NCBI GenBank assembly: GCA_001179505.1 | Contig: CDMY01000355.1 | Span: 40,155-104,154, forward strand | Length of the DNA: 64,000 nt | Direction of reading: 5' to 3' | DNA from: Vitrella brassicaformis CCMP3155 | Lineage: Eukaryota; Protista; Chromerida | Part shown: in pieces, positions 31,298 to 64,000 of the stretch | Layout: each line of letters starts with the position of its first letter | How positions within the stretch are numbered: position 1 is the stretch's first letter | Made by a program: the position numbers and the translations under genes | The notes under the pieces: generated by a model | Seen by the model: the letters and a program-made list of their open reading frames with translations, nothing else | Told to the model about the DNA's origin: nothing | The model's database searches: none

Positions 31298-32155
31298 CTA
31301 CCAGACCATGTATTGCCTCAGCAGCTTGGCGCCCGTGACCATGAAAAGGGTCTGCCACACGCCCAGGCCTATCCTCGGCACGATGCCCTGGAACAGCCCC
31401 GCCACGCCGTCGTTGCGCACTACGGTGCGGAGGACCTGCAGCAGGTTCTCCTTCGGCTTGCCCTCGTTGGCCGCCGCCTGCATCTGGATGCGCGCCACCT
31501 CGAAGGGCTGATTCCATGTCGACAGGGCTCCGCCGAGGATGCCGGCACAGGCCTCCTGGGGGACCGTGAGCTTGGCGTCCTTGTCGCCGTGCAGCCGGAC
31601 CTTCAGCTGCGACCTGATGAACTCGGTGATGCCCTGCCGCGACGCCCAGTTGGTGGCCTGTCGGAATGCGATGGCGGTGCCGCCCGGGTAGAAGCCCTTG
31701 ATGCCCTGCTTGGCCCACACCTCGGCTGCCTTCTGAGTCACCGACACCTTCCCCTCACCCGTCACGGCCGCCGTCACGAGGAAGGTGCACGGACCCATGA
31801 CGACCGTCTGGCACACACCGCCCCCGGCTCCAGCCGCAAAGCCTGCCAGGGTCTCGCTGCAGCCCGCTGACGTCATGGCCGTGAGGATGAGCTCCTTGCT
31901 GTAGAGCAGCACGGCTCCCTTGGTCGCCGACTCGACCATCTTGGCTGAGGTGCCCTGCCAGAAGGCCAGCGGACCGCCACCCTTCTCCATGACAGCGAAG
32001 AAGGCCCGCACAGTCGACTCGTTGCGGAAGCGGCCCATCCTGGTCTTCCACACCTCAAAGGGCATCCCCAGCGTGGCCGCCTCGACGCATTGCAGCACGG
32101 CGCCATTCACGAGGTCCTTCCAGCCGCCCTTCGCAGAGCCAGCCGGAGGCGACAT
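31298..32155 (-). CDS. YHM2: Mitochondrial carrier, YHM2-like (citrate/oxoglutarate carrier family); intronless
   Basis: Carrier signatures PFEVWKTRM and PFEVARIQMQ. ESATKGAVLL, RQATNWASR, WNQP and PRIGLGVWQTLFMV closely match yeast Yhm2 as I recall it (EASTKGAVLL, RQMTNWGSR, PRIGLGIWQTVFMV). First true ATG is at 32155. Confidence 0.85.
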   Translation of the reverse strand: MSPPAGSAKGGWKDLVNGAVLQCVEAATLGMPFEVWKTRMGRFRNESTVRAFFAVMEKGGGPLAFWQGTSAKMVESATKGAVLLYSKELILTAMTSAGCSETLAGFAAGAGGGVCQTVVMGPCTFLVTAAVTGEGKVSVTQKAAEVWAKQGIKGFYPGGTAIAFRQATNWASRQGITEFIRSQLKVRLHGDKDAKLTVPQEACAGILGGALSTWNQPFEVARIQMQAAANEGKPKENLLQVLRTVVRNDGVAGLFQGIVPRIGLGVWQTLFMVTGAKLLRQYMVW

Positions 32156-32292
32156 CCGAAAAGGGCAAGGCCGCACAGATCACCTGCACAGGCGATATGG
32201 GGAGAGGCCGGTGCAATGATACTCGTCGTCGTTGGCGGCGTATTCGCGGCGGAAGGGGACTCGGGGAGAAGTCGCGAAAATGATCACTTCCA

Positions 32293-44074: not shown

Positions 44075-47000
44075 TCATGCAGTCACTTGGATGTCTCCCA
44101 CTCCACTGTACACATCGGAGAGCGGCCCGCCCGCCCCGCACGCACCCCTGTCGTCCACAGTGATGCTCAGATCGACCGCCTGCGGCCCCACACACGGGGT
44201 CGCCACATCCGCACCGGTCGGGTGATACAACAGATACGTCGACAAGCTCCTGCCCAAAGCCTCCAGGGTGCCGTCACACGTCAGCATCGCATCCTCGATA
44301 CCGTCGCCGACCGAACAGGTCAGCCCCTCCATCCCAACTGCCGACGGCACCCGAACACCGTTGACAGCGTCTGGCCGGCCGAGCGAGACCCCGCCGCATG
44401 GCGTGACGGCGACTGTGAGGCGAAAGAGTGGGCTGTGGTCGCTGGTGCAGGAGGGGTAGGCCAGGATGGAGGGGGCGGCCGGTAGGGTGGTGGTCGCGAG
44501 AGGGGGGGAGGGGTGCGGGGGGAGGGCGGGGGAGTCGGTCTGCGATGCGATCCTGGTGCGATAGAGGTCGGGCTGGATGTCGATGTCGGCGACGGTGAAG
44601 CCGACGATCTCCACATAAGGAAGAGGCCCAGACAGGGATATCGACACCGGCACGTTGGGTGAGGGCGTGATGGCTGGTGCGTCATTCGTCGGCTCAATGA
44701 ACACATCGATGGAGCACTCCACAGGCGTGTTTGGCGACAGGGCCGTCGTCAGCCTGGCAAGGATCCGTATGGCACCGACAAGGTCCCCTCCCTGCGTGTC
44801 GAACTCCACCACACCAAGGCCAGTCCTCAGGTCGGCGAGTGTCCCCGTGGCTTCACTCTGAGTGGAAGCAACGCCATACGGCCCCATTGCCCCAGCCGGC
44901 GACTCGACCACCGTCACCCCAGGGCTGGCCTTCCAGTCCACAGTGCCATAGCCGGTGGGAAAGAAGAGCATCATGGTGCCGATGACGGGGTCGTCAGGCC
45001 CGCCACTCGTGTGCTCGAGGTTGCGGTCGCCTATCGCCACATTCTGGCCGATGGGGGCCGATGCACCCTCAGGCACAGATGCCTTGGAGGTGCAGACGAG
45101 CAGCGGCGGGTCCTCCACTGCCGTGACGACGGTGTTGAGAGTGACTGTGTCGGTGAGGTTGCCCCCCGTGCCCGTGTAGCCATTGTCATAAACAGTGAGG
45201 GCCAGCGCGTCCGCACCGCTGTAGTTGGGGAGGGGGGTATAGAGCATCTGTCGAAGGAAGGCGTTCAGCTCCGCCACGGTGCCCTGGATGTCGATGGTGG
45301 ACGCGAGGCCGTACGAGAGCGTCCCATAGGTCCCCCAGGACACGGTGGCCTCTTCGTTGAGCGTCTGTATGCCCCCACTGGTGCACGCCAGACGGGCCAC
45401 CAGCACGCCATCCACAGACTCGCCCACATCTGGGTCGCTCACGGTGAAGCCGACAATCGCACTGCTGTCCTCGGCCAACGTCAGGGGAGGCGCAATGGGC
45501 TCCAAGATAGAGACTGACGGCGGGTCATTGACTGCCTGCACCTCAATCACCGCCACAATTGACGTCTCAACAGGCACATTGCTCCACGACACCCGCGTCT
45601 GCGTCTGTGGCGGGTCAGTGTCGCTCGTCGGTATGAAAAGGTCGAAGTAGTCTGCTGCTCGCGAGCGCCAGAAGTAAGGTGGGTCTGGTGCTGTGTGGGC
45701 GGTGAGAGCTGCGTCATAGGTGAGGAACACCTGCTGCGCGGCGCTGAGTGTCGTGTGGGAGACGTCAGGGTGCACCGGGCCGTAGGGCGACGACGCCAGC
45801 GAAGGCGACAGCGTGAAGCCGGTCGTGCCAGGGTCCTTGACAGTGATCTCCACGCCAAGCATGCCGTTCCACCCCGCCGGAAAGGCCACGTCAATGTTGC
45901 CCAGCAGGGCCGTCTGCATGGCCGCCAGCGTCTTGGTGCGCGTGACGGTCGTCCCACTGACCCCATCAAAGGTCAGCTGGAAGGCCGGCGGGCTGGCCAG
46001 GCCCTCAGCAAGCCTGACGGCATCAGGGTACGCCAGCGGGGGGTAGAAGTCGTGGACTGTGAAGGAGAGAGAGGCCTCGAATGTGTCGGTGGGGAGCGCC
46101 TCGCCGTCTTGCAGGGTGGTGCCCGTGATGGTGGCGGGGGTGCCCTCTGGTGTGGACACCATTGGCGAGGCAAGCTGGAGCGTGGGGCGTGTGTTGAGAG
46201 GGCTGATGGTGAGGTCGAATGAGATGGCTGCCTGTGGGAGGGCCCCCGTGGTGGCGAACAGGGGAGGTGTGGGTGGGAGGCCGTCGGGGCGGCCCAGCTG
46301 GACGGCTGTGAGGGTGACTGTCACGGTCCCCGTGTATGGAGCGGCCGTGGCCGACTCTGCAGACCAAATGGACACAGCAAACACACACTGAAAAGATGAA
46401 CACACGTCAGCAGCCAGTGGCTGTGCGTGTGCCTCTCTCTAGTTACCTGTGCGTGTAGGAGGGATAAGGTAGATGCTCTTCAACGCCTGCTGCACCTCCT
46501 CGAGCAGGCCCCCCACCTCCAGCGCGCCGGTCTCCTTGCCCCGCTTCCGCACACTCCCCTGACCCACATCCACCTTCACACCCGACGCACCCGTCTCAAT
46601 CTGCACCAGCACCATCATCGGCCCGTCGTCACTGTCGCGCGTCGGCACGTCCAGCGCCACACACCCCCTGACGTGAAGCGGCGTGTGCTGGAAGCTCTGG
46701 AAGGTCGGGGGGCAAGACGCGTCATACGTCCACACCGGGGGCTTGTTCTCTGGCTGTGGGAGGATGAGCACGTCTGCTGTCGCTGTGTGCGTCAGCGGAG
46801 CCGACGGCAGGATGCCGCTGCCGTTGTCGTCGACCTGCGCCGTGAGGGTCACCATGCCACTCTGCCCAGCAGTGGGCAGGAAGGTCAGACGGTTCGCTGG
46901 CGTGGCCTGGATCGCCGCAAAAGCCGTGTCCGTCACATCGAGAGCGAGAGTGGAGACGGCCGTGACGAGACACCCACTGCCGTCGAGCGCCGGGGCTGCT

Positions 47001-50000
47001 GGTGTGGTGATGGTGACGGCAGGATCGTTGAGGGAGCACATGTTGATGACACCTGCGGCAGCAGGGCTGACGGCAATCGAGATGGACACGCTTTGAGGCG
47101 AGCCGTCTGGGTCGGTGAGTGCCATGGCGTCGAATGTGAGTGGCGTGGCTGTGCCCTCGAGGGTGGTGGAGAAGGTGGGGGTGAGGGTCAGCAGCGGGGC
47201 GTCGTTGACCGCAACGACGGTGATGTCGACGTCTCGCGTCAGGCTCGTCGCAGCGGGGTCGGTGCCGGTGGGCCACGCCTTGACCGTAACCTTGGTCGCG
47301 CCTGCAGCACACAGAAGAAGACAGTGTCCATTTCCATAGACACACACGAGCCCCTCCCTCCCTCCTATGTCTCACCAGCATAGTTTGCCGGCGGCCGATA
47401 CCTCACTCGTGTGAAGATGTCCTGTATGTCCGTCACATCGCCCTGTAGCGTCACGATGCCCGCCACAGCTGGCCGCACACCGCCCCGGTGCAGCACACTG
47501 GGGGGCTCGGGCGAGTCGTCCGGGACGGTCATCAGAATATCGCCCCCAGCCACAGCGTCAGGCGTGACCTCCACAGTGAATGAGAGGTGGGGGTTGGCTG
47601 TGGCCAGCACCACGTCGTCGCGCAGGGGGAAGCCCTCGCTGTCCTCGGACATCTGGAAAGGTGTGGGTGAGTTGTCCCATGTGAGAGTGAATGTCTGCTG
47701 GCAGTCCGGCAGGTGGAGCACGCTTTGGTGGTGCGCAGAGAACCCCTCTGGCGGCGGGATGGTGGCGCTGCTGCCCTCCCCTACTTCAGCGGGGTAGCTC
47801 ACGCCAATGCCAAACACAGCTATGTCGCAATCGCCTTCCGCACTCCTACAACACAACACACCGGCACACCTAGAAATCCGCCATGGACAAACCTATCCCC
47901 CCTTACCATTTCAGTGTCAGCCCCGCCAGCTTGGTCGCCGCGTCGGTGCGTGTGGTCCTGAACACCAGCCGACTCGCATCGTTGGCGGTGCCGTCCTCGA
48001 ACAGAATCCCCGATGTGTCCCCGAGCTCAAGCGTCCCCTTGTCCACCGTCAGCTCCCACCGCACCAGCGCCTGCGCCGCGCCGCCCACAGGCGACGCTCC
48101 ATCGACGTCCGACACAACCAGATCGGAGAACACCTTTGGCGACGGCCCCGCAATGACTCGGTATGAGCCCTGGAAGGCCGAGCCGTCGGTCCACCTGATG
48201 GCTGGGGGGTCGTCTTGGGCCGTGATGGTGACGGTGAGGGGCTGGGATGTGGAGGAAGGGGCGAGAGTTGAGGTGGGCGAGAGGCGGCGTGTGAGGGTGA
48301 AGGTGACGGTCTGGGTGGCGGTGATGTCTGGGGGCGGGGTGTAGAGCATCCTGGTCAGAAAGTGGTTGATGTTGGCTGCGGGGCCGTTGAGCGAGATGGG
48401 GCTGCTCTCACTGCTCTCGCCCGCAATGTTGACTGCACCCCCGGAGGCGGTCACATTCAGCTCCAGGAAGCAGGAGCCGTCCACCACCATGCTGCAGTCG
48501 CCGTCTGCCACACTCACCCCGCTGATGAGCGTCGCCGTGTCCTCCAAAACAGACACCGTCGAACCTGCGGGCAGGGTGATTGTCGGGCTATCGTTGTCCT
48601 GGGCCGTCACAGCGATTGTGAATGACATGCGGCACTCCGGTTGGTGAGCTGGGAGGGACATGCCATCAGTGACGCTGAGGTCCACACCCACCGTCCCATA
48701 GTAGTCTTGCTGCGGCGTGACGAAGAAATAGCCCTGGAAGAAGGCCTCAATATCTGCGGGCGAGCCGGCCAGAATGGCTTGAGACACCAGCAGCGGGGCG
48801 GCCACTGGCGCATAGGGGGCCGACTGGCTGGTGGAGACCTCTGTCGACGTCACCGCCACCCCCAGAGCCTTCAGAATCAACGCGAAGGGGTCGGCGTCTC
48901 GGAGCCCCATCTGTGTGTCGATCTCGGCAACGATGGCTGCGATGGCGAGGCCACCGTTGTGGGCCGAGAAGGCCACTCGGACAGATGGCGGGGGAGTCGC
49001 CAGGCCGGTCGTCAGATGCACATCGCCGTGGAACGTCAGGGGGCACTTGAATGGGGTGTCTTCGACCGTTGAGAGTGGGTAGGTGGACAGAGGTATGTAG
49101 AACCCACAGGCCTGCAGGCACCACATACACCCCACATCAACGCACACACACAGAGACAATTGTACCCTCTCCGTGTGCTCACCGCGGTAATGGGCAGCAC
49201 GTCAAGCGACAGGGTGCTCTGGTCGGTCAGCTCGGCCGCTGTGCATGACGCCGACAACGATGGCTTGTCAGTGGTCGACGGCCACTGCCCCATCAGCACC
49301 ATTGATGCGGGGCAGCCGATGCTGCTCTTGTCGCTGAGTGTGACCGTCACAGAGGCCGTTCTGAGAGGCGTGGAGGGGTCATGGGTGCGGAGGGCGCGTG
49401 CGGGCAGCGGCAGCAGCACCTGCAGGTGCTGCACCAGCAGCTGGAGGGAGGGCAGCGGCCCCTCGACCGTGATGGATGTGTCGGACTGAAGCCGGCCCGT
49501 AATGCTCTGTAGCACCCAAGACCTCTCCACCATGTGTGTGGGGTCGACGCCCACCAGCCCCTCAGACACAGACACAGTCAGCCGCATCCACAGCGATGCG
49601 TCCATCGCCCCGTCCGGCTCGTCCAGGGTGATGTAGCTGCCGAGTGGATACTGCCCGCCCTCGGCCACAGTGAGCAGGGCGGTCGCATCGGGTGCGGTGG
49701 TGCCTGTGTGGATGGTGACGGCGGGTGGGTCGTTGATGGGGTGGACATCGAGCAGAGACTGGGACTGGTCGTAGAGGGCGCCGGGGCCGCTTGGGGGGGG
49801 AGATGGTGCCGCCAGCCATTCACGTACCTGCAGGGCCCACACACAACACACATAATTAAAGGTGGGTGGACGATTGCGTTGTGTGTCCATGCCATGCCAT
49901 GCCATGGGTGTCTTCATACCTTGATGGTGAGTAGGTCTTGGCCATACCAATGGGGTTTGGGGTCGTACCAGAGGTCCCCAAGCATCCCAACCAACGCACC

Positions 50001-53000
50001 CACGGGGCCCGACACTGAACACACACGACACAGCACAGCACGGACATTGCAGGCACAAGCAACAAAGACACCACCCTCCTTACCAGTGACGCTCCCAACA
50101 CTCTGCCCATCCAGGAAGCTGACAGCCACGGCATCACTTCCCGTGAGAGCCGTCCAGTAGCCGCCCCCTGCCGAGCGTCCCCCCAGGCGCACCCCTCCAA
50201 CCCTCGCAGCCACCTCCAGTGTGAGCATGTCAGGTGAGGGCAGCGGGGTGGCCGTGAGCGACAACCAATTCGCCATGCTGATGGGAGTGTCTTCCAGGAG
50301 GTACATCAGGGGTGGTGCGGTGATGGACCGGAGGGGCCGGGAGTGGTGCAGGATCGACACACGGATGGGGAGCGAGGCGGATGCCGATGGCTGAGTCGCG
50401 CGGAATCGCTCGGCCGTCACCGTCAGATTGACAATGTCCTCGCCGACGTGAGCGGCATCGGCAACGTAGATCAGCCCGTCGAGCATGGCTTGGACATCGG
50501 CGTACGTCGTGGGGATCTCGATGGGCGACGGGAGGGCCCAGGGCACCTCGACGTGACCCTGCAGTGCGACCCTGCCGTGAGTGAATGTGACGCCCAGAAG
50601 TAAAGGGTCGCTGGACACTGCTGAGGAGGAGGGCATGGCCACCGACACACCGCCCAACGGCACCTGCATTAAGCGACCAGACACAAACAAGCATGAGCCA
50701 CAGTCTTCTGTCCTTCCAGCTGCATCTATACCGTCTCGCCCTTGGTCACGGTGAGAGGTTCTGCGATGGCTGAGGTGAGGGATGGAGGGGCCGGGTCAGG
50801 GCGGTCGGCGTAGATGAACAGACGGTCGGTCGACAGGGGATTGGGGGCGGATATGTCGTTGGGAGCGCGGAGAGCTATGCCGATGGTGGCCAAACCTGCA
50901 GGCGCGGCGCATAAGAGACAAAACAGCGTGCCTGGGGTCTCTTCTGGTGAGTGTCAGTCACCTCGTTGTGTCAGGGTGCTCTCTTTGAAGTGCAGCGCCT
51001 CCAGGGAAGGCCGCAGCTCCCCCATGCTCCCCGTCAGCACCATCCGCCTCTCGAATGTAGGGGACGTGCCAACCTTCAGCCCTGCAGTGGGGCTGTCGCA
51101 CTCCAACACCACCTCGAACATGCCGCCCACATCCACAGAGTCCTCACTATTGGCGTTCACCAGCCGCACCGCATCAGAAGCCAACGCAAGAGTGTCCCCA
51201 GCCGTCACGCGATACCCCCTGCTCTCCACCAACAGAACAGGGTAGGCCTCGCTCTGCCGCAGCTGTATGTCGATCCGCGGCGTCACTGCTATCAGTGAAG
51301 CGGGCGGCTCCACGGCAAAGTCGAAGGGGCTGCCCCCGTTGAGATGGTGATGCTCCAGCACTGCTCCTGGGTCGAACGCCTCCACACGCACCACGTCGCC
51401 AGCAGCGCATTCTGCCACCGTCGCGCAGGGGAAGCGGACGGACAAGCGGATGTTGACGAAGTCCATCAGAGCTGACGGCAGCCCCTTGATGGTGAAGCTC
51501 CCGTGCCGCTCGGCAGCTGGCGCATGGGTGCTGTAGACGCCACTGAGGGCATTGTCAGTCACGCGGTGAGGGAGGAATCGGCAGGCCCGACAAATAAGGG
51601 ATAGCGACACGGGGAAGGGGTGGGCGATCTGGAGGTCCAACACACTCCTAAAGGGCAGCCAGCGGTTGCGGTGCGACCATGCCACCGTGCTGCCCACACG
51701 CGCCGACGGCTGTATGCCAAGCGTCACAGCTGGTGCGGTCAGGGGGGCAGTCACGTTGACGAAGATCTCCGTCTCGGCGATGGGCCGCGACGCACCCTGG
51801 GGCGCCACACTGATCGAGAGAGGCACCAGTAGCGCCTCTCGCCGGCCCTCTGCGAAGCTTCCCAAGCCGGGAGGGACGTAGATCAGGCCAGAGAGAATAC
51901 CTGACAGCTCTGTGAGGCCGCCTGCCGCCGTGTATTGAGGCGCCGTCACCGGCCAGCCACTCAACGAGCCGACAAACATGTCGATGCTGAGCTCAAAAGC
52001 GAATTGGTCCATGACGCCCGCAACTAGTGGGTTGGCCCTCAGTGTCACTCCAGAAGCAGATAGAGGGAGCGGGTCGCCGCGTGTGGAGAGATGGGGGTGG
52101 GTGGCTGTGAGGGCCACGCTGAAGGGCGGCGCGTCCTGAGGCATCTCGATGGACAGAGGGAGCGACAGCGCCGACGTCATGGCATCCTTGAGCGCATCCG
52201 ACGTCTGCAGGCGGGACACGTCCGTGACAAAGATGCCGATCTGCCCGACGTGTGTCGAGCCCGAAACCACTCCACTGGGGTCGCCCTTCAACGCGATGCT
52301 GCTGCCGCTGCTGAGCACACGATTAACTTCCCTCGCAGGACCGGCAAACCGCACTACAGAGCTCTCATTGGCGAGTGGCGTCACATAGGTGTAGTTGCTC
52401 TCCTCGTAACCGACATGCAGCCCCAGCCCCGCCTGCGGCACGACCACAAGATGCCCGCCCGTCGACCGCACCGTCACCTCAATCACAGGCTCCTTGGTGT
52501 CCATCGGCGTGAGGGACGTCACTTGGCAAGAGGGCAGGAAAACCTGGTAGCCGATTGTGACCTCGACGCGGCCGCTGTCGCACGCCAGCTGAGGGGCGGG
52601 TGGGGGCACACGCACGCCGAGAGTGATGGAGTGCTCGAAGCCGCTGGGGAGGCAGTCGGCTGCGGCGACCATCGTGGTGGTAGCGGGGTTCTGTAGGGGC
52701 TTGGTGGCCGCGGTGGCCAGCAGTGAGGCGCTGGGCTGGAAAGCCAGGGACGCCATGGCATCGTTGATCTCCTGCAAGGCCCCCCGCAGCGACCACCGAG
52801 CCGCCACGTTCACGGAGTTCACAGCACACTGGGGTGGGCAGGTCCGCACCGCCAAGCCCCCGGCCCCCACAGTCGCACTCATATCGGCCAGCTGCCCGAG
52901 CTGCCCGCCAGACAGCAGCGTGACGAAGGCCTCCACCTGCACGCCCGCGAGATGGCCCTGGGGGTCCTCGAACGACATTGACGGCAGGGGGAACACCTTC

Positions 53001-56000
53001 GTCGAGTCGGTAGACGCCGCATGGACATCTGTGTAGTGTGGGGCGGTGAGGGAGCAGTGGGCTGTGGCGGGGGGGCTGATGCGGATGACGGCATCCTGGC
53101 TCACGTGGTGCTGCACGGGGGTCGTCTGGTGGGCTATGTCCACTGCGATGGCGTCCTCGACCGCTGTGGCGGCCAGGCCCCTCACCGGTGTCTCGCCCAC
53201 ATACATCACGTGGTTCGACAGCACCTGGTTGAGGCTCCGCAACGTGCCCCTGACCACCATGTGAGAGGGAGAATTGACCTGGGCCTGTGCCAGCTCGTCC
53301 GGGTAAGGGTATGGCCCCACGATGCTCCAGTTGCCCCGCTGAGCCGTCATCTGCACCGTCAGCACGTCGCTCCTTCGCGCGTCGGGTGCGCTGATCTGCA
53401 GCCAGCCGCCCAGCAGCCGCGGCCAGTTGGTCTGCACGTCGAAAGGCGATGACGCCACGAGCAACGAGGGGGGGTCTGGTGTGGCTGTGACGACAACGGG
53501 CAAAGTGGCTGTGGTCTCATAAGCTGTCGTGGCCGACAGATCCCGCACCACCACGTCGATCAGCTGTGTGCCGCTGAAGTCTGCTGGAGGGGTGTAGGTG
53601 GCCTGTGAGGCGCGCAGGAGGCCCGCAAGCTCCTGCACCGTCGTGGCTCTCGCCGACATGACATTGGCCGCAGTGTAGCTGACACTCCCACCCGTCACGA
53701 CTGCGGTGCCTGCGGGCGATTGAAGCGTCCCCGTGAGCTTGGTTGCATCATCCCACGTGACATCTCTGGCTGTGATTCGCAGCTCCACTGCGCCCCCGGG
53801 GACGATGCCGTCGATGGTGATGATGTTGTCCCAGAGTGGGAGCTGCCCGTCCTCTGCCACCTGTAGAGGCGCCGCCGAAGTGCTGTGTGCGATGGATATG
53901 GACGCGCCGGCAGGATTGGCAACGACGACATCGCACTCGATGGAGGGCGTCACGATGGTCGAGCCCGATTGGAAGGGCGACACTGGGGTGTAGAGGGCCG
54001 ATGGGAGGGAGAACAGATGCACTGGTCCACTGTCGCTTGTGGCGTGTCCGGTTGCTGTCACAGTCACCCTCCGAGTGCACTCGATCGCCCTCGTGTCTGG
54101 GCATGGACAAGCGGCATAGTACAGCTCGCTCTGCATCAGGTAGTTGATGCGGTCGATGTCAAACCCCCGCAGCACCAGCTCCCTCCCGTTGCTCAGCACG
54201 GCGAAATCCCGCTGCGTGCCCGGCACCCTCAGCCGCTTCCATTGCCACGTGCCGTCATCCAGACCGCCTCCCTGCCCCCCGACCAGCCCCCAAGGCGCCC
54301 TCGACGCCTCCCGCTGCTGCTCGTGCTGTGTGGTCTGTCGGAACTCGATGGCGTCTTGGCAAGACGTCATGCCGAGAATGGCTGGACTGTAGGTGACGGG
54401 CCCGTCCGCTGTCACGTGGACAGTGTACTCAAGCTGAGCCGTCAGGGGGACGTCCTGGCCGGCTGTGAGGGTGAGACCGAGCCCGCTCAGAGGGATGGCC
54501 AGCGGCTGCATGGCTTGGCCTGACACGGACGGCTGGCCCGTCCGGGTGAGCAGCAGCGTGCCCCCCTGGTTGTTCGAGGGCTGCGTGACCACGACTGCCA
54601 CCTGCAGCTGCACCGAATGGCGATCGTCGACCACCGTGACGTCGACGCCGGCCGACCCCCGATACCCGACAGATGATGCATACTCCAGCCCCTGTAGTGC
54701 AGCCGCCACCTGTGCCGCTGTGCCCTGGAAGGCCAGCAGGAATCCCGGCGGGTAGTCGAGAGGCCGGTACTCCGCTGTGGTCGGGCTGACAGGGGCTGAC
54801 GGTGCGAGAGCAACGGTTCCGTCGCCCGTGACGCGGACCTCCACCTCCAGCCTGTCGACACCACCGCCACCCATGCCGTCGTCAGCAAATGTGATGGACG
54901 CCTTGCTGCCGATAGACACAGTCCTGCCTGCCGAGACGAAGACCACTGGATGGGCGGCGGTGAGGGTGGGCGGCTGGTTGACAGCTGTGAGCGTGACGGA
55001 GAGGGCTGCTTCGTTGCTGCCGGGTGAGCGGAGCAGTACTCGAGCTGTGGACGAGGGCCAGGGCGAGAGTGTGGGTGGCGCTGCGATTGTGAGGTCACTG
55101 AGGCAGTCGCGGAGGAGAGAGATGCTCCTTGCCGTGATGGTCAGGGCAGTGGGGTGGGAGACCTGGCTGCTCAGCAGAGAGAGGCGCTCTGGAAAGAGGA
55201 AAGGATACACACAGGTGCCCGTGTCCGATGGATGTGGCCGTGTGCTCGCGCACCTAAGCCAGTTGCAGTGACGGCAACGGTGCAGAGAGAAGGCAGCGGC
55301 GTGACGAACACCAGCCCGCCCTCCAGCCACACATCCATCGACGCACTCGAATGCCCCGGCAGCTCCGCGGCGTTGACCAGCTCATCCTCATAGTCCACAG
55401 ACGTCACGCCGACCACACCCGCCAAAGCCAGCCCCCCACCGATCTCCATCGACGTTTCTGGCGGGGCCAGCAGGATGGTCGGCTGCAGCGGGTCCTTTGC
55501 CGACGTCACGTGGATCCACACAGAGTGGTCGAGCGTCACGGCGGTCAGTGCCGCCTGTATCTGCAGCCGACAGGTGGGGGATTGGTGCGTGTTGAAGTCG
55601 GGAGTGGGGAGGAAGACCACGCCGCAAATCGGCACAGCCACCGCCGGCAGCCGGATGCGGAGCGTCGATGAGCCGGCACACGCCCCTGCCAGCACCACCG
55701 CCCCCTGCCCAGCCCACGTGCTGCACAAGGTCGCTTCAATGGTGCCCTGATACGCCGTCAGCGTCAGCACAACGTCATCCCCTTGTGTGAAGCCGTCGAT
55801 GGCGATGCACGGGAGCGACAGGGGGGTGTCCTCCATGGTTGAGAGGTCCTCCTGGGGGCTGGTTGGCGGCACCAAGACGACCTTGGGCGTGGCGGGGGAG
55901 TCGGGATGCACCCGAATGGGCACGGACAGAGACGACGAGGCGGTCGGGTCGCCCTCTGTGCCGTAGACAGTGATCCACAGCTGGTCGTAGAAGTCGCTGC

Positions 56001-59000
56001 CCCTCTCCATGTACCGGCCGTCGATTGGAATCCACCGGTAATACAGATCCCTCAGAGCCGTGTTCACGTCATTGAGGGCCGCTGGGCCAAACACCAGATA
56101 CTTGCCGTCATAGCGCAGTGAGTCAGCCTGCAGGACGCTGCTCACGACAGCGCTGCTCGTGTCGTGGAAGAGGCTCCCCCGCCCCAGCAGCTCCACACCA
56201 GCGCTCCCACTCGTCCGGTTCCCCCCCACCATCCGCACACCCATCTCCACAACCACACCTGTGCACACCAACGGCTGAGCGCTCGACAGGGATACAGCGG
56301 GGCCGAGGGCGATGGCGCTGAGATCCGTCACCTCCAGCGTGCCCGCTGCCGCCACCGAAATGTCGCAAGATGGCTGAAGGGCTCGCCTAAAGATAACTGT
56401 TGCACTGGTGGCCGCCTTGGGGTGTGCAGTGGGGTTGAGAGTGAGGTGGAGAGAGAGCCGGCCACGGGCATGCTGATCTGGGGATAGCATGAGTGTGTGG
56501 ACGCCTGACGAGAGGGCGGGTAGGGGGCCTGATACGATGGCTTTGCGGAAGTAGAGAGGGGGCCCGGTGGTGTCGGTGAAGCTCAGAGGCGGGATGTACT
56601 CGATGCTCACACCCTGGCACAGCACACACAGGTCCATGAAGGTGAGTTAAGTGCATGGACAGATCACCAGCCAACATAGCATGCCCCTGTTTAGTTACCG
56701 ACCGGGTGTGATGTGTCCAGCGACGGCAAAGCGATCCTGCCGCCCGTCTCCATCCACACCACCAGCCTGTAGGGAGAGGCCGTCGCGTCACCTGCCTGCA
56801 AAGTGATGCCGGTGAGCGTGAATTCGCCCACAGCCGGGATATCTATGGGCCGCTGGGGGTCTGCTGTGTCGACGGAGAGGGCAGGGTCGTCATAGGGAAT
56901 GGAAACGGTGGGCGGGAGGGGGCGTGGTGACACCGACACAGCGATGCTGCCTGCATGCGCGGGCACACACATAGGCGGGCGCTTTTGTCGGCGTGTGAAG
57001 GAAGTGTTCGGAGTTTGTGTGCTGACTGACTGACCTGTTGCTGTTCCAGCGTCTTGGTCCTGTGTGTGTCTGAAGTGTTCCACTGACACTGATACCACCC
57101 CGCTGCTGCCGCCGTCGGCCATGGTCGTCTCCAGATACACCAAATCTGGAAGGGCAGCCAAACCGCTCGGCAGCACCCTCAAAGACAGCTGACTCAACCA
57201 CAGACACACGCACACACACACACATCACCATCACACACACACACACACACACAGAGTTCATGTCGCCTTCACCCCGCTCACCTTTGCGCATCCCCGAAGG
57301 CACGATGCCGGCGCACTGTCAGAGGCCGGTTGGAGAAGGTTGGGGTACTGCAATGTCAGCCCCCCGACGGTCGTCTCAATGGTCACACTGAGCATGGCCG
57401 TGGGGCCGCCCTCCAGCCCATCCACATACAGCTGTGAGGGGGCGGTGTAGTAGTCGGATGCATCCAGATCGGTCAGGGTGAGCGCGCCGTCCAGCGACAC
57501 CTGAGCAGGGCAACAAAAGAGGATTGTGATCCGTCATAAGTTTGCGTCATGTACGGTGGCTGACCTTCTTGCCGGCAGTAACGGTGAGGTCTGCATCGAC
57601 CTGCGGCGGCTGTAGCCGGCGGATCACCGCTACCCAGAAGCGCCAGCGACCCACAAACTCATAGTCACCTGCATACACACGAAAAGCCGAATGACGCCGT
57701 TGTGTTTGTGAGAGCCTCTGCGACCTCATTGCTCGCCCCACCGGAGCCAATGGTGCGTTCAGCCTTCAGGAGTGCCTCGATGGTCGCCACGGGCGAAGTG
57801 AGTGACCCAGCCGGCACGGCAAGCCGAGCGCCCTCGAGCAGCACATTCTTGGTGACGGTGACAGACGTCTGCCATCCGATAGAGCGACCTCTGAGTGGGT
57901 GCAGCAGCGTCAGGGATGAGGCACCAATGGCCGTGGACGCCACGGTGTTGGTGTCGATGCTCAGCTCGCCGACTGTTGTGGTCAGCTCCACACGAACACT
58001 CTTAGGCCTGCATGCAGTGCAGAAACCCACCGAGAGACAACACAGCCACGTGGATTGGATGTATGGCCACTCATTGTCATTGGTTGATCGCTCCGCTCCC
58101 ACCCATCTGCTGAGCTTGCGACCAGTGCGATTCCACCAATAAGCACATCCTGCCCCTCCTCCACAGACAGCGCTCCATTAGGCGGCACATCCAGCCGCAT
58201 GACGGTCCCCCTCTGCACCACCTCAAGGGCCAGTGTCTCGGTCACTGGGGCTGGCATGACGGTGCTGCCCTCGCTGCCCGTGTAGCCAAAGTCCTGCACA
58301 CTCACGGTGAGGGTGTCGGTGCCGCTGAAGTTGGCAGAGGGCGGCCAGTAGTGCACCCACTGGAGACACTCGTTGAGCCGCAGCAGACTCCCAGATAGGA
58401 CGAGTCGGTGAGCTGTCCGCTGCTTGACCAGCACCCCCGCCTCAGACATGAGCCCGATGGTCCCCTCGTCCACGTGGATGTCCACCTCGACTGGCGACGT
58501 CCGCCACTCCTCTGCGTCGATGTCACTTACCGCCACAGGGGGCAGAAGGGACGCCGTGGCCGGATCTCCCACCACTCCACCGTCAGCCAGGCCATTCAGC
58601 ACGCTCAGCGGCGACACACCTACCGTCCCCCCAACCAGGGCCACATCGAACTCGATGGTCGGCAGGCTGTTCGATGGTGTGGTGGCCACGTGCCAACATG
58701 CCGTGGTCTTTCGCGTCGTGACGCCCTCAGCATCGATCGTCCCAGCGACGCCCCCATCGTCGAGCGTGATGCAGAGGGAGTCGAGCCCAGGGTTGAGGTG
58801 GTTGCCGTGCAGTGGGGGCCTGTATACAAGGGTTGCTAGGGCGTTCTGTAGCGCTGCGAGCGTCCCCACCAAGGCCAGAGTCGACGGTGGGCCCTGCCGC
58901 TGGTCGACCGTCACCGCGTGGCTGGCCGCGTCCACCGAGACGCTCCCGAAGGAAGCCGACACAGTGAGGGTCATGCGTGGAGGTGTCGACTCGAATGCTG

Positions 59001-62000
59001 CGTCAGGGTCGCTCAGCACGAAGGAGCTCAGAGCGATGGGTGCGTCCTCGGTGCCCGTGATGGTCCTCCACCAAGGATAGAGCGGCGATGTGACGGACGG
59101 CGGGTCGTTGACGGCCTCGACAGTGATGGCGAAGGACAAGTCGCGGCACACTCTCTCCACCGAGGGGGCCGCTGGCGGTGCATGGGACCGGTCGTCGAGG
59201 GATGGGAAGCAGACCTCAACAGTGACGGTGACCGGGCCCCCATTCTCGCTGGACCAGTGTGGGGTCGAGTGGAGGAACACAAACCGCCGTATCATTCGCT
59301 CCATCGAGGCAGCCGCGGCGATGCCCTCGATCTTGCTCGCATCAACGGAGAGTAGCTGCGTCAGCCAGTCGGATGGCGACACACGCGTGGATAGAGGAGA
59401 TGTCTCCCATTTGGGCCTGCCCGCTCCCCATGTGTGTGGGAAGAGCCGGCCCTGGTCCACCTCCACAGAGAAGAAAAAAGGATAGAGCGGCAGGTCGCTG
59501 TCAATGTGCAGGCCGATGTCGCCCAGTGGGGCGGCCGTGTCCTCCTTGGCTGTGAGTGAGGTGTGGTCGAGTGCGATGGTGGGGAGGTTGGCGGCCACCC
59601 TGGCTGTCTCGATGACGAAGTCAAACGAGAATGTGGTGGTGAGGTTGCCGCCTCGCCCCTCGACGCCGCCGTCTGCCGCACGTATCTGCACCACCTCCTC
59701 GCCCTCAAACGACTCAGGGGGCCGGTACACCACCTGCACATTGAAGGGGACAGATAGGCCCAGTGACGGTGGTCATCTTTGTCCCTGTGTGAAGAGCTTA
59801 CCGAGTGCAGCATGGTAGTGACGTCGTCTCTCGTCCCAGGACCGATCATGAGGTAGCGGTGAAGCGCTGGCGGCGGTGGGATGGCCGTCACAGGCAGAGA
59901 CCCAGCCAGGGCGTCGAAGTGCCCCACACGGCACTCGACCGTCGCAGTGAAGGTGTTCCACTCGGCCTTCTGCACACTGCCGCTCAGATCCGCATCGTCG
60001 ATAGAGAAACTCCCGAACCCCACTGTCTGGTCGCTCCACACGTGGCTGGGCGGCATCGCCGTCACCCTGACAATGGGTGGGTCGTTGACGGCCTCGACAG
60101 CGATGGTGGTGTGGAAGTCGACTGTGAGTGGTGTAGGGTCCTGGGCTGTTCGTGTGGATGGGTCGATGGCTGGGCTGCCGTAGCCGTTGTCATCGATGAA
60201 GACCTTCATGGCCACATCGCCGTTCATGTGGAGAGGGGGTGTGAACCGAAGGTCGTCAAGACAGGCCCGCAGGATTGACATGGCGGGGTACGTCGACGGC
60301 CGTGTCGTCAAACGGCAGGACACTGCACCAGGCAGACACACGCAGTGGGATCACTGTATGTATTCGGGCCATCGCTTCACTTACCGCCTGCAGCGTATGG
60401 ACAGTCGGTGACGAAATAAGTCCGCAAGTCGATGGGCGCAGTAAAGCCCTCCACATTGACGACCTTGTGGTTGGGGCATCCGACCCACCCCTGGGCCGCC
60501 TGCACGCTGAGGGTGTAGTAGCTGTCAGGCAGATGCGCCCCGTCATCGGTCACATCGATGCAGCACAGCCTGGTCAGATAGCCGTCCTCTGGCGCAGACA
60601 GGGGGCCGCTTGTGAGCGTCACGGAAGGGCGCTGGTTGGCCGCATGGACGAACACCGCAATGTCAGCCGAGAAGGCCACCGGCACGCCGCCCTCCTCCAC
60701 TGTCATCAAGACGGTGATGTGCTGCATGGAGCTGCCGTGGCTGCCGGCCGAGTCACGATGCACCGACAGCGACGCCAGGTCAGCATTGGCCTGCGCGAAG
60801 GTGCAGCCGATGCACGAGATGGACGTGGCTGCAGCCGAGGGGTCGCCGAACGAGATCTGAAAAAAGACAGCAACAAACACTAGTGGTTGCTGCAATGTGC
60901 GTCGCCCTTCTCCCCGACCGTGAGAGGCCCCGCGTCGACGGAGAGTGTCATGTCGATGGTGTCAAACGCCCCATGGACCAAAGCCACATTCCCCAGGGTC
61001 TTGGTGGTCTCCCCGACCAGCACCTCATACAGCGGCTCCCGCTCCAGTCGCGGCATTCGAGCAGGCAGGTGCAGACCGACCGACCTGGACACTGACAGCC
61101 CCGTGAGCCGATTGGTGGCATTGACGACCATCTGCAGGCTGCCGTGCACCTCCTCATTGCGGATGAGGGTGAGAGGATCCATGAGACGATTCGACAGAGG
61201 GCCACACGTGAAACATCCCACCAGCGACTGACGCCGCGGATCACCACTGTGTGTACACAAGACAGACAGACAGACAGATGGACAATTGATGCCCAGACAC
61301 CACACCCACAACCATGCTTGTCTGGCTCGCTCACGCGATGGCGACGGCCCATATGTTGACGGGCTGGCGAAAGGTCACTTGGATGAAGGGATCAGCATCA
61401 TGCAGATCCGGCAGCCAGCACGAGGAGTATGAAGACACCAAAGCAGCCCGATCGGCCGCGAAATACACAGGGGAGAACTCCGATGACGCGATGATGGTAA
61501 GTGCGGTCGATGGCGGCACATCAGCGGCTTGACTCGCCCAGACTAGCGGGGCTGCCGACTGTGCTGAGCAGAAGGTCGACAGCGGGCATCCATACACCTC
61601 AAAACGAAGGGCAGGGAACCTGATTGTTGACAAAACGGGTTAAACAAAATATGCATGCATCCTTCCTTTTCCGTGTCGTATCACGTCGATCGACCGTCTT
61701 CCCTTGTTTCGCCACTCACCCAGAGAACTTGCGGGGCCGAATCCGCAGCCTCTGCGCCGGCACTGGCTGTCCAAATGAGGTCTTGTGTGCCGCCTGCGCG
61801 TCCGCCGGTCCGCTGAGCCCGTCCTGCACCCTCCACTCCTCCGCCCACTCGATCTGGCCGACCGTCTCGATGGCATACTCCGTCACCCACCCGCCATAAG
61901 CAACCTGCCGCCCCTCGTCGTTGCTTCGCCAGTAGCATGACGCTTGGGAGGCGAAGGGCGAGAGGGACAGCTGCACGGGCGGGCTGGGGCGGGAGAGGTC

Positions 62001-63568
62001 TGATGGGGATGTGGCGAGGGATGGTGGGGACACCCATATGGTCAAGGCGAGAGATGCGTCGTTGGTGAGATCGCTGCTGCTAAAGCATGAGGTCTCCACG
62101 TCGGATATTGCCAGCTCCGGGGGACCTGTGTGGTGGAAAGGTCTAGAAGTGACTTGCGCCTGTGCGGTTTTGTTGCTTACCAATGCTGACAGCCCTCGAC
62201 ACGACGACCGGCTCTGCTCCAGAGTAGGTGACTTGGGGCGGATCCACAACGTTTCGGACATACACCTGAATCAACAAGCAACAGCATCGTCATTTACTCG
62301 CCTTTCTCTGTGAGATCTTCCCTTCGCTTGTCTGGCCCCTCACCTACCGGCATCTCGATGGTGTCGCGCCAGAAGAACTCAACCGGTGTGCCGCCGATCT
62401 CGTGCACTGCAGTGTTGGAGTCACAACAGGAAGGACAGCGCATGTGGTTGAGCCAGTGCATGTGTGGCTTTCTGGTCTCCATGCTCACGGCTGACTAGCA
62501 ATGCCACTTTGTCGCCAAACACATCCGAGTTGTAGTCTGGTGGTGGCCGGAAAGACAGCTGACCCAGCTTGCCGTTCACAGACAACACATCACCTTCACG
62601 CAGGCAAAAAAAGAAAGAGACCAAAGATTGCATGCTCCCTCCGTCTTCTCCCTGGTGGTGCCTCCCTACCTGTGACGTTCACCTGGTGGGCGAATGTGCT
62701 GCCATCGACGGCCAGGGTTCCCGCAGACACCGCCAGCCCCACCAACACCTGCTGCGACGCCACGGCTGTGGCTGAGGCAGTCGAGTGGACGTATAGCAAC
62801 AGGATGGGCGAGGTGGTGTCCTCCGGCACCTCCCACCAGTCGTGTGTGGCCCGCAGCAGCAGGGTGGACGAGGTGGCCACGGGCGTGACGGTCATGCCGA
62901 TGGTGGCAGCGTAGTGGCCCTCGGTCGATGCACCGCTCTGATCGACCAGACAGGCAGATTGTGAACAGACAGGGAGGGCAGATGGACATATGGATCCACG
63001 GCGGCTCCCTGACCCGTTTGCTGCATGATACAGAGAGTGTGTCGTTGGAGCAGTGTTGGCACGGCAGATACTCCAGCTGACTCAACACGACCGGGGCAGC
63101 ATCCAACGGCGCCTGAAACCTGACATAAACCAACCAAGCAGCCACCATCCACGGCCATTCAGACACACATGGCATCCACCGACCTGATGGCGTGTCCCGT
63201 CCACTCCATTATGTTGACCCCCGCGATGGACTGGGTGTGCACCTCGCCATAGGCCGCAGACACACGCACGTCCATCATGGCGTCATCGTCAACTGACGTG
63301 CCACTGGCGGCGGCCAAGACGTCGATGCCGTGGATGGGCGACGCGGCGCCTCCATGCACCTCTTGATGAGGCCGAGATATGACACATGCCTTATCAGATA
63401 CACACGCGAAGAGCACAGACAGACAGGCAGCCAACACACCCGTCCGCACACAGACGAATGGGTGACGTGTTTGGCTGTCTTTTCTCTCACCGATTGGGCG
63501 AGGGCTCCATGAGTCGACAGTATCCACACACACACGAGCACCGTCACAATTGTCGCTCGAAGATTCAT
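44075..63568 (-). CDS. Giant secreted protein (roughly 5,500-6,000 aa, about 25 exons) with discoidin/F5-8C-like domains and tens of cadherin-like/Ig-like repeats resembling bacterial adhesins
   Basis: ATG 63568 with signal peptide MNLRATIVTVLVCVWILSTHGALA. Long exon ORFs (1458, 776, 585, 488, 418 aa) are separated by 50-100 nt GT-AG introns. Recurrent motifs G...LN..L..L.Y.P..(N/D)F.G.D.L...V.D.G and V.AVNDPP/NDAP. Length is a rough sum of exons. Confidence 0.8.
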
Positions 63569-64000
63569 CGTCCCTCTAAATCGACACTCGCCCGCTGCAT
63601 CAGTGGCTCACGCAGATCCATCCATGTCCTCGCCGCCTCTACCACATGCCTCCCTGGTGTTGGGCGCCGCTGATCAGATCTATCATCGTAGCTCTCGCGC
63701 GCGAGATCCGCTCTCGAACCAGCACCACCTGGCCAGCAAAGGCACAGATCTCGCTAGCATTCAGCCCATCGCATTGGTTGGTTGGTAGTGTGCTGCCCCC
63801 GATCTTCGCGAAGCTCGCACTGGGGGAAGTGGCTGTCAGAAGTGCAAGTCGGTCCAGGGTTTAGGGTCTAGGGTTCATAGACCGACGATCCACTGATCTG
63901 TGAGACAGGACGGCTGTTGAGTCTTTGTCCGTTCCATGAGACAGGCCATGGCGGACAGGACGTCAGACAGGATGGACTGACGCATACTACATGTCCTACG

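Follow-up and report, generated by a model that had tools for sequence, protein, structure and literature searches.

A giant, probably secreted protein of about 35 tandem-95-type modules encoded by an intron-bearing nuclear gene of Vitrella brassicaformis

The window analysed here is a 64,000-nucleotide stretch of contig CDMY01000355.1 from the chromerid Vitrella brassicaformis CCMP3155. Its minus strand carries, at 44075-63568, a gene for a giant repeat protein, and both tblastn and exact matching showed this interval to be exactly the annotated coding sequence of CEM04679.1 (UniRef A0A0G4EZD3, here also P0003), labelled in the database 'unnamed protein product [Vitrella brassicaformis CCMP3155]'. 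Because the exact matching of P0003 to the minus strand yields 28 exons running from 63568 to 44078, the coordinates of the 19.5 kb gene proposed in a preliminary description of the window, made from the letters alone, are precisely those of the annotated coding sequence. The protein is 5,807 amino acids (aa) long, with the summed exon lengths of 17,424 nt corresponding to 5,807 codons and a stop codon, which lies at 44075..44077 after the C-terminus ...DVYSGVGDIQVTA. In an exhaustive protein search the last 770 residues of P0003 were identical, residue for residue, to the last exon. About 35 immunoglobulin (Ig)-like, E-set beta-sandwich modules in a row make up nearly all of the chain.

From the start codon onwards the exons lie on the minus strand at 63568-63491, 63389-63184, 63119-63014, 62937-62670, 62593-62489, 62406-62348 and 62265-62181 (exons 1-7), 62125-61720, 61619-61335, 61246-60919, 60856-60385, 60322-59802, 59733-58103 and 58007-57742 (exons 8-14), 57668-57565, 57500-57282, 57188-57035, 56950-56703, 56613-55254, 55188-50962 and 50895-50732 (exons 15-21), and 50663-50084, 50014-49920, 49827-49183, 49111-47907, 47845-47376, 47301-46447 and 46356-44075 (exons 22-28), all placed by exact matching to P0003. 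All 27 introns are of the GT-AG type and are 55-101 bp long, intron 1 (63390..63490) measuring 101 bp, and phases 0, 1 and 2 are represented 11, 11 and 5 times, respectively. When the few codons around each of the 27 junctions were joined by a script, only one GT...AG solution reproduced the public protein in every case. The introns have a G+C (GC) content of 53.5%, 11 points lower than the 64.5% of the exons. The GC content at third codon positions (GC3) of the exons is 78%, and that of two neighbouring open reading frames (ORFs) is 78% and 88%, the latter being the ORF of a mitochondrial carrier. Exon 20, the largest, stays open for 1,409 codons (4,227 nt) in DNA of 64% GC, so its openness is not due to chance. 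The positions at which introns cut modules vary, those after aa 799, 973, 1517, 3764, 3957, 4762 and 5047 being examples, and only some introns fall between modules, such as those after aa 4204 and 4606; there is no pattern of one exon per module. The locus is a bona fide nuclear eukaryotic gene, and the introns that the preliminary description had supposed it to have gained are present. Upstream of the start codon only 432 bp of the scaffold are left (window positions 63569-64000), so that the promoter region is cut and the promoter, with any further upstream exon, lies outside the assembly.

To define the repeats, a profile was iterated from one unit, which found 20 significant copies in the raw stop-to-stop segments; the same profile found 24 significant and 11 weak copies in P0003. 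With a profile pooled from 1,484 modules (1,464 from other retrieved proteins and 20 from Vitrella) there were 25 significant and 10 weak copies in P0003, spanning aa 27-5786. The units are 110-150 aa long and share 14-36% pairwise identity, in agreement with the tens of diverged, beta-rich modules that had been described. The peptide quoted as an example in that description is in the last exon, and the six NDPP/NDAP junctions it listed are all module starts as defined by the profile (44686, 45529, 47206, 49734, 59109 and 60086). The main array of about 30 tandem-95/Big_9-type Ig-like modules, supported by matches to the profile, Big_9 and NF012211, covers aa 643-5807 (44078..60856, minus strand) and is interrupted by 17 introns. 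Its best-conserved module is at aa 5317-5466 (45101..45550, minus strand). Two weak modules precede the array close to the N-terminus, at aa 27-131 and 153-251 (exons 2-5, 62489..63389, minus strand; profile E-values 8.5e-8 and 3.6e-7). The consensus of the Vitrella modules reads NDPP, then ..ED......LSVSDPD......LTLTV..G.V.L......L.L.GTLAELNAALAGLLYTP.....G...LTV.V.D.G, and has the same layout as the consensus of the 1,484 pooled modules, which reads NDAP, then ..NEDT.L.LSGISVSDVDAG...LTVTLSV.NGTLTL...GLTF...LTFTGTLADINAALAGLTYTPAANFNGADTLTITVNDLG.

A phmmer search with the 776-aa last exon retrieved 1,417 proteins at E<=1e-3, 102 of them at E<=1e-30, with the top non-self matches between 2e-206 and 1e-72. 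The best of these (2e-206) is P0004, a protein from a bacterial metagenome-assembled genome, which is encoded by a single uninterrupted ORF of 14.7 kb flanked by bacterial mreB, mreC and rpoZ. A tandem-95 repeat protein of the planctomycete Roseimaritima sediminicola (WP_153555201.1) matched at 8.4e-83 and a tandem-95/Ig-like protein of Ferrimonas at 9.4e-37, and other named matches included a RapA2 cadherin-like protein of Magnetococcales and proteins with VCBS repeats. These scores bear out the proposal that the repeats are of the bacterial-adhesin type. A survey seeded with P0004 returned 675 relatives at E<=1e-10, and those with names came from Planctomycetota (Pirellulales, Tepidisphaeraceae, Gemmatales), Proteobacteria, Cyanobacteria, Myxococcota and Actinobacteria (Solirubrobacteraceae), the only others being one protein from a protist transcriptome, an 'uncultured bacterium' and an 'ELWxxDGT repeat protein' given without organism. 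This spread agrees with the observation that Big_9, Cadherin_5 and Cadherin_4 are characteristic of huge extracellular proteins, to which Planctomycetota are the largest contributor (PMC11573180). A word-indexed protein search, a method too insensitive for this case, found only two distant relatives with the last exon and three with residues 4764-5807 of P0003.

Profile libraries pointed to the same family at lower scores. Against Pfam Big_9 (PF17963; curated cut-off 23.6 bits) one exon reached 27.3 bits while the others scored 10.9-19.7 bits, and matches to Cadherin_4 (25.1) and Cadherin_5 (26.5) were below their cut-offs on each exon, so that the Pfam assignment anticipated in the preliminary description is obtained for Big_9 on one exon and is otherwise sub-threshold. 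With NF012211, the NCBIfam model for the tandem-95 repeat, single exons scored 13-26 bits, which add up very roughly to 120 bits; the cut-off of 90 bits applies to a score of the whole protein. No exon matched the Cadherin family PF00028 at E<=1, and Cadherin_3 appeared on one exon only, with an E-value of 0.2. Going by the phmmer matches, the homology of the Vitrella modules to the bacterial tandem-95/Big_9 (Cadherin_4/Cadherin_5) repeat family is secure.

We modelled the module at aa 5317-5466 with AlphaFold2, using an alignment of 18 Vitrella modules. As the preliminary description would lead one to expect, the model is a confident Ig-like beta-sandwich (predicted local distance difference test, pLDDT, 85.6; predicted template-modelling score 0.81), with one short helix at the GT(V/L)AELNAFL motif. 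Foldseek gave no specific match for it in the PDB, only generic Ig-like folds with template-modelling scores of at most 0.5, and the module profile run against PDB sequences gave antibody matches at chance level only (E>=0.1). Using VIA-align, the model could be superposed on residues 141-261 of human B4GALNT1 (9h6j_A; Z 10.1, 3.9 Å over 114 aligned residues), which we read as an Ig-like sandwich, on a PKD domain (4xed; Z 9.2, 2.4 Å over 94 residues) and on a repeats-in-toxin (RTX)-like domain of the RTX-adhesin sort (9cse; Z 8.0). Since the top matches are Ig-like, PKD and RTX-like, the modelled fold is best described as an E-set Ig-like sandwich and not as specifically cadherin.

At the very start of the protein, beginning at 63568, there is a signal peptide of 24 residues, MNLRATIVTVLVCVWILSTHGALA (63497..63568, minus strand), read from the sequence and followed after the cleavage site by QS. 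It is the top hydrophobic segment and the only place in CEM04679.1 where 19-residue windows are strongly hydrophobic, which confirms the endoplasmic reticulum-type signal peptide noted earlier. A hydrophobicity scan of the entire protein found no other transmembrane-like stretch, and no transmembrane or glycosylphosphatidylinositol-type signal at the hydrophilic C-terminus. Neither HemolysinCabind nor sortase nor any other anchor family turned up in the Pfam and NCBIfam scans of the exons. CEM04679.1 is thus predicted to be directed into the secretory pathway by an N-terminal signal peptide that is cleaved off, and to have no membrane anchor.

Between the two N-terminal modules and the main array, exons 8-10 (60919..62125, minus strand; aa ~304-642) encode a region weakly resembling discoidin (F5/8 type C) domains. 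Exon 8 matched positions 55-114 of PF00754 (E 0.03) and exon 9 positions 2-52 (E 0.25), both below the curated cut-off, and the language-model look-alikes of exon 9 in a protein atlas were F5_F8_type_C_2 clusters (score 0.90). The model of exon 8 alone, made with AlphaFold2 without an alignment, was uninformative (pLDDT 34), and residues 300-660 had no phmmer match among all the relatives that were fetched. The simplest reading would be two diverged discoidin-like domains in tandem, each split by an intron. We also considered a circularly permuted single domain in exons 8-9, given that the two halves of the PF00754 model occur in reversed order. Such a region may be a candidate sugar-binding, adhesive head. 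UniProt names A0A0G4EZD3 'EGF-like domain-containing protein'; the name is unsupported, as no EGF family was found in the Pfam scans of the exons and two PROSITE EGF patterns, in our transcription, did not match CEM04679.1.

The preliminary description had taken the repeats to be Ca2+-binding and cadherin-like or Ig-like. The structural core of the module, G-T-L..L..L.Y.P...G (G76, L78, L88, Y/F90 and G98), is kept in most of the 25 Vitrella modules that were aligned. The N-D-x-P junction is kept in about 8-10 of the 25, the glutamate of the 'ED' motif (E17) in 12, and the aspartates of the DxD motif, D30 and D32, in 11 each. The Ig-like character and the tandem-95/Big_9 membership stand, while the acidic motifs are present in only about 40-50% of modules and the fold is generic E-set, not specifically cadherin. 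With the acidic motifs partly lost, any stiffening by calcium would be limited to part of the rod.

Further along the scaffold, the mitochondrial carrier gene already mentioned is an ORF at 31298-32176 of the window (minus strand) with three Mito_carr repeats (E 7.5e-26). Elsewhere in the Vitrella genome, pieces of the giant gene of 0.1-1.4 kb, with 83-96% nucleotide identity, are scattered on five other scaffolds: C336 (G000:C336:8506-9912), C77 (C77:24273-24815 and C77:28442-29220), C443 (C443:58249-58803), C974 (C974:186-625 and C974:6980-7232) and C339 (C339:50910-51008). They are in mixed orientation with pieces that are far apart in the gene lying next to one another, and some contain indels and frame breaks; they may represent partial duplicates that have died, fragments that were captured, or leftovers of the assembly. 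The 137-aa protein P0051 (CEM38264.1), on a 7,524-bp Vitrella contig that is probably C974, matches aa 542-630 of the last exon with 88% identity and most likely results from gene prediction on one of these fragment copies.

In our reading, to which we give a probability of roughly 0.7, the locus is a domesticated nuclear gene for a secreted protein of about 35 tandem-95-type modules whose scaffold is most likely ultimately bacterial. An ultimately bacterial origin is the most economical because the distribution in eukaryotes is patchy in comparison with the vast bacterial family. It is also the taxonomic distribution that suggests that Vitrella may have acquired the gene directly from a bacterium. 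Each Vitrella module scores higher to some bacterial module than to any other Vitrella module, though the comparison is biased by number (1,464 modules against 19). A tree was built from 81 modules over 107 columns, in which the Vitrella modules sit on terminal branches two to four times the median length. The divergence of the modules is compatible with repeats that have long resided in the alga and were not homogenised, but relaxed constraint would give the same picture. In the bacterial relatives P0005, P0008 and P0015 branch lengths between internal modules are often only 0-0.06, the modules being identical or almost identical, whereas those of Vitrella are all highly diverged; repeat turnover is evidently quite different in the two hosts.

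Several results weigh against this reading. Among the 64 top-ranking proteins of those compared, the mean best score per module differs little (27-32 bits), and for this reason a donor lineage cannot be singled out. The module tree, which had been suggested as a check and was run, did not resolve, being dominated by the long Vitrella branches; it does not distinguish the acquisition of a whole array from expansion within the alga. Homologues of the Vitrella protein exist in eukaryotes. That CEM04679.1 is one gene is the statement of a public, Augustus-based gene model, the Pfam and NCBIfam scores taken exon by exon are mostly under the curated cut-offs, acidic motif residues are retained in no more than about half of the modules, and the discoidin-like head has sub-threshold and uninformative scores. 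The ancient acquisition put forward in the preliminary description is thus borne out in part: the strong divergence of the modules and the lack of a visible donor would fit an old event, while the transfer may or may not have come directly from a bacterium, given the homologues in eukaryotes. Both the direction and the age of the transfer are inferences.

The gene might instead have come from another eukaryote, or share descent with one, so that the Vitrella protein would belong to a eukaryotic clade of tandem-95-type giants and not reflect a direct bacterial acquisition. P0020 (E 1e-65; L018:10001-21652, ENA ERZ25074135, contig ctg10398_29x_l) is encoded immediately next to a Ty1/copia element with RVT_2, rve and zf-CCHC domains, on a contig of 949 kb, and its cluster is also found in JGI metagenomes. 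Its cluster mate P0161 has 7,371 residues, a signal peptide and 45 modules, followed by one strong transmembrane helix (aa 6882-6901) and by a tail rich in proline and RS, and P0161/P0020 would by these features be a giant type I membrane protein of a eukaryote. The contig of P0039 has fragmented, eukaryote-like gene calls, and some Vitrella modules group with those of P0027 and P0039 in the tree, but these groupings join long branches with weak support. P0022 comes from a transcriptome of Mantamonas, where it may be prey contamination, and an expressed gene of Vermamoeba has a tandem-95 protein as its best match (PMC7125106). Since one or more eukaryotes besides Vitrella have homologues, the gene may have passed through other eukaryotes or between them. 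However, the proteins on eukaryotic contigs do not resemble Vitrella more closely than the bacterial ones do (mean best module score 27-29 as against 30-32 bits), and the architectures differ, in that Vitrella has neither the transmembrane helix nor the tail of P0161 and its residues 300-660 are unmatched in any of these proteins. We therefore regard descent from or with another eukaryote as rather unlikely. No protein of Chromera or of other EukProt species was among the 30 top matches whose sources were looked up, a statement which does not extend to a direct search of Chromera velia. A D-x-G-[YFW] motif tried as a marker of a eukaryotic subfamily was rejected as it is not diagnostic, and the contig of P0037 carries the P0037 gene only.

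Bacterial contamination or a chimeric assembly would be a natural concern for a protein whose named close relatives are all bacterial, the more so as about 80% of the Vitrella reads were bacterial and 620 bacterial scaffolds were removed (PMC4501334). Yet the frame is interrupted by 27 GT-AG introns where the bacterial relatives are single uninterrupted ORFs, the GC3 of the gene resembles that of neighbouring ORFs, and fragments of it occur on five other Vitrella scaffolds. Because of the introns, the host-like codon composition and the eukaryotic neighbour gene on the same scaffold, the mitochondrial carrier, contamination is excluded for this locus, and what chance is left to a chimera is minimal. 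A decaying or functionless relic, or a model that fuses several genes, is also conceivable, with the divergence and the loss of motifs resulting from relaxed constraint. The low identity between modules, the loss of half of the acidic motif residues, the long terminal branches and the degenerate fragments elsewhere in the genome are what such a relic would be expected to leave. Against this, the coding frame stays open for 17.4 kb over 28 exons, all splice sites are canonical and preserve the frame, there is a single signal peptide at the very start, introns of at most 101 bp leave no intergenic gaps, and the structural core motif is kept in most modules, all of which makes decay or fusion very unlikely.

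Compared with known systems, the Vitrella protein is closest in layout to the bacterial tandem-95/Big_9/Cadherin_4-5 giants such as WP_153555201.1 and P0004. The order of elements in the module is the same (NDxP, E-D, DxD, G-T-L..LN.AL..L.Y.P..F.G.D, D.G), and both have dozens of tandem copies in chains of 4,000-8,000 aa, an Ig-like E-set fold and an extracellular destination. Only the Vitrella gene has spliceosomal introns, 27 of them, and a eukaryotic signal peptide, and the terminal motifs of the bacterial proteins, 'LEERxLLDA' at the start and 'PAWRVxDP' at the end, are absent from it. Many of the bacterial giants have near-identical internal repeats, whereas the Vitrella modules are all diverged, with about half of the acidic residues lost. 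The fibrillar adhesins of Monzon et al., which combine a stalk, an adhesive domain and an anchor, and Bap/RTX adhesins such as BapP and LapA likewise have a long stalk of tandem Ig-like domains that include the Big_9 type; in bacterial fibrillar adhesins Big_9 domains build stalks (bioRxiv 10.1101/2020.12.07.414375), and domains of this type occur in the Ca2+-dependent biofilm adhesin BapP (PMC12153261). The likeness may extend to a lectin-like head near one end and to calcium-type junction motifs. The Vitrella protein differs from them in that no anchor, retention module, RTX or type I secretion system signal was found, in that its adhesive domain is weakly indicated, and in its eukaryotic host.

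With P0161/P0020 it shares a eukaryotic host, a signal peptide and, in the 45 modules of P0161, the module family, while the transmembrane helix, the long proline- and RS-rich cytoplasmic tail and the very long uninterrupted ORFs are found on their side only. Classical cadherins and the CSPG repeats of FRAS1/FREM (Pfam Cadherin and Cadherin_3) are also tandem beta-sandwiches with acidic motifs between domains. Unlike classical cadherins, the Vitrella protein has no PF00028 match, no transmembrane helix and no catenin-binding tail. We can further imagine that the Vitrella protein and P0161/P0020, perhaps together with P0027, P0032, P0033 and P0039, form a eukaryotic lineage of domesticated bacterial fibrillar-adhesin scaffolds, which protists would use as fibrils in the wall or matrix or as adhesins anchored in the membrane, and that the Vitrella version is a secreted, anchor-less one with a lectin-like head; for now this is a doubtful proposition.

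How might such a protein work? After cleavage of the signal peptide CEM04679.1 would be exported, and its 35 or so Ig-like modules would form an extended rod like beads on a string. An Ig-like domain is usually about 4-4.5 nm long, so that a string of this number would measure roughly 150 nm. Calcium may stiffen the rod at those junctions that retain the acidic NDxP, E and DxD motifs. The rod could be deposited extracellularly and form a fibril in the wall, sporangium or matrix, or it could serve as a soluble adhesin; lacking an anchor, it would be held by interactions with the wall or matrix, possibly with the discoidin-like region binding glycans, or else be released. We infer the rod shape, the calcium dependence, the location and the role of the protein from its architecture. 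Vitrella has thick-walled vegetative cells and sporangia and lives in association with corals. Given these thick walls and this habitat, a role in the wall, the matrix or adhesion would be plausible.

Neither CEM04679.1 nor A0A0G4EZD3 was found in the searchable literature, and no paper describing the gene was found, nor does the published survey of chromerid extracellular proteins mention the tandem-95/Big_9 domain type. The gene is annotated yet uncharacterised, and adds a eukaryotic member with introns to a known bacterial family. No new mechanism is implied, as this family, its fold and the notion of protists carrying bacterial adhesin domains are already known. Chromerids are free-living photosynthetic relatives of the apicomplexan parasites, and their extracellular proteins have been studied as source material for the adhesins of the parasites (PMC4501334). 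To the families in that published survey the Vitrella gene adds a further one. It shows that a eukaryote can take over a complete fibrillar scaffold of bacterial type, with about 35 modules, and fully naturalise it with introns, host codon usage and an endoplasmic reticulum signal. Other eukaryotic users of the tandem-95 module are indicated as well, and these would make the origin and spread of the scaffold testable.

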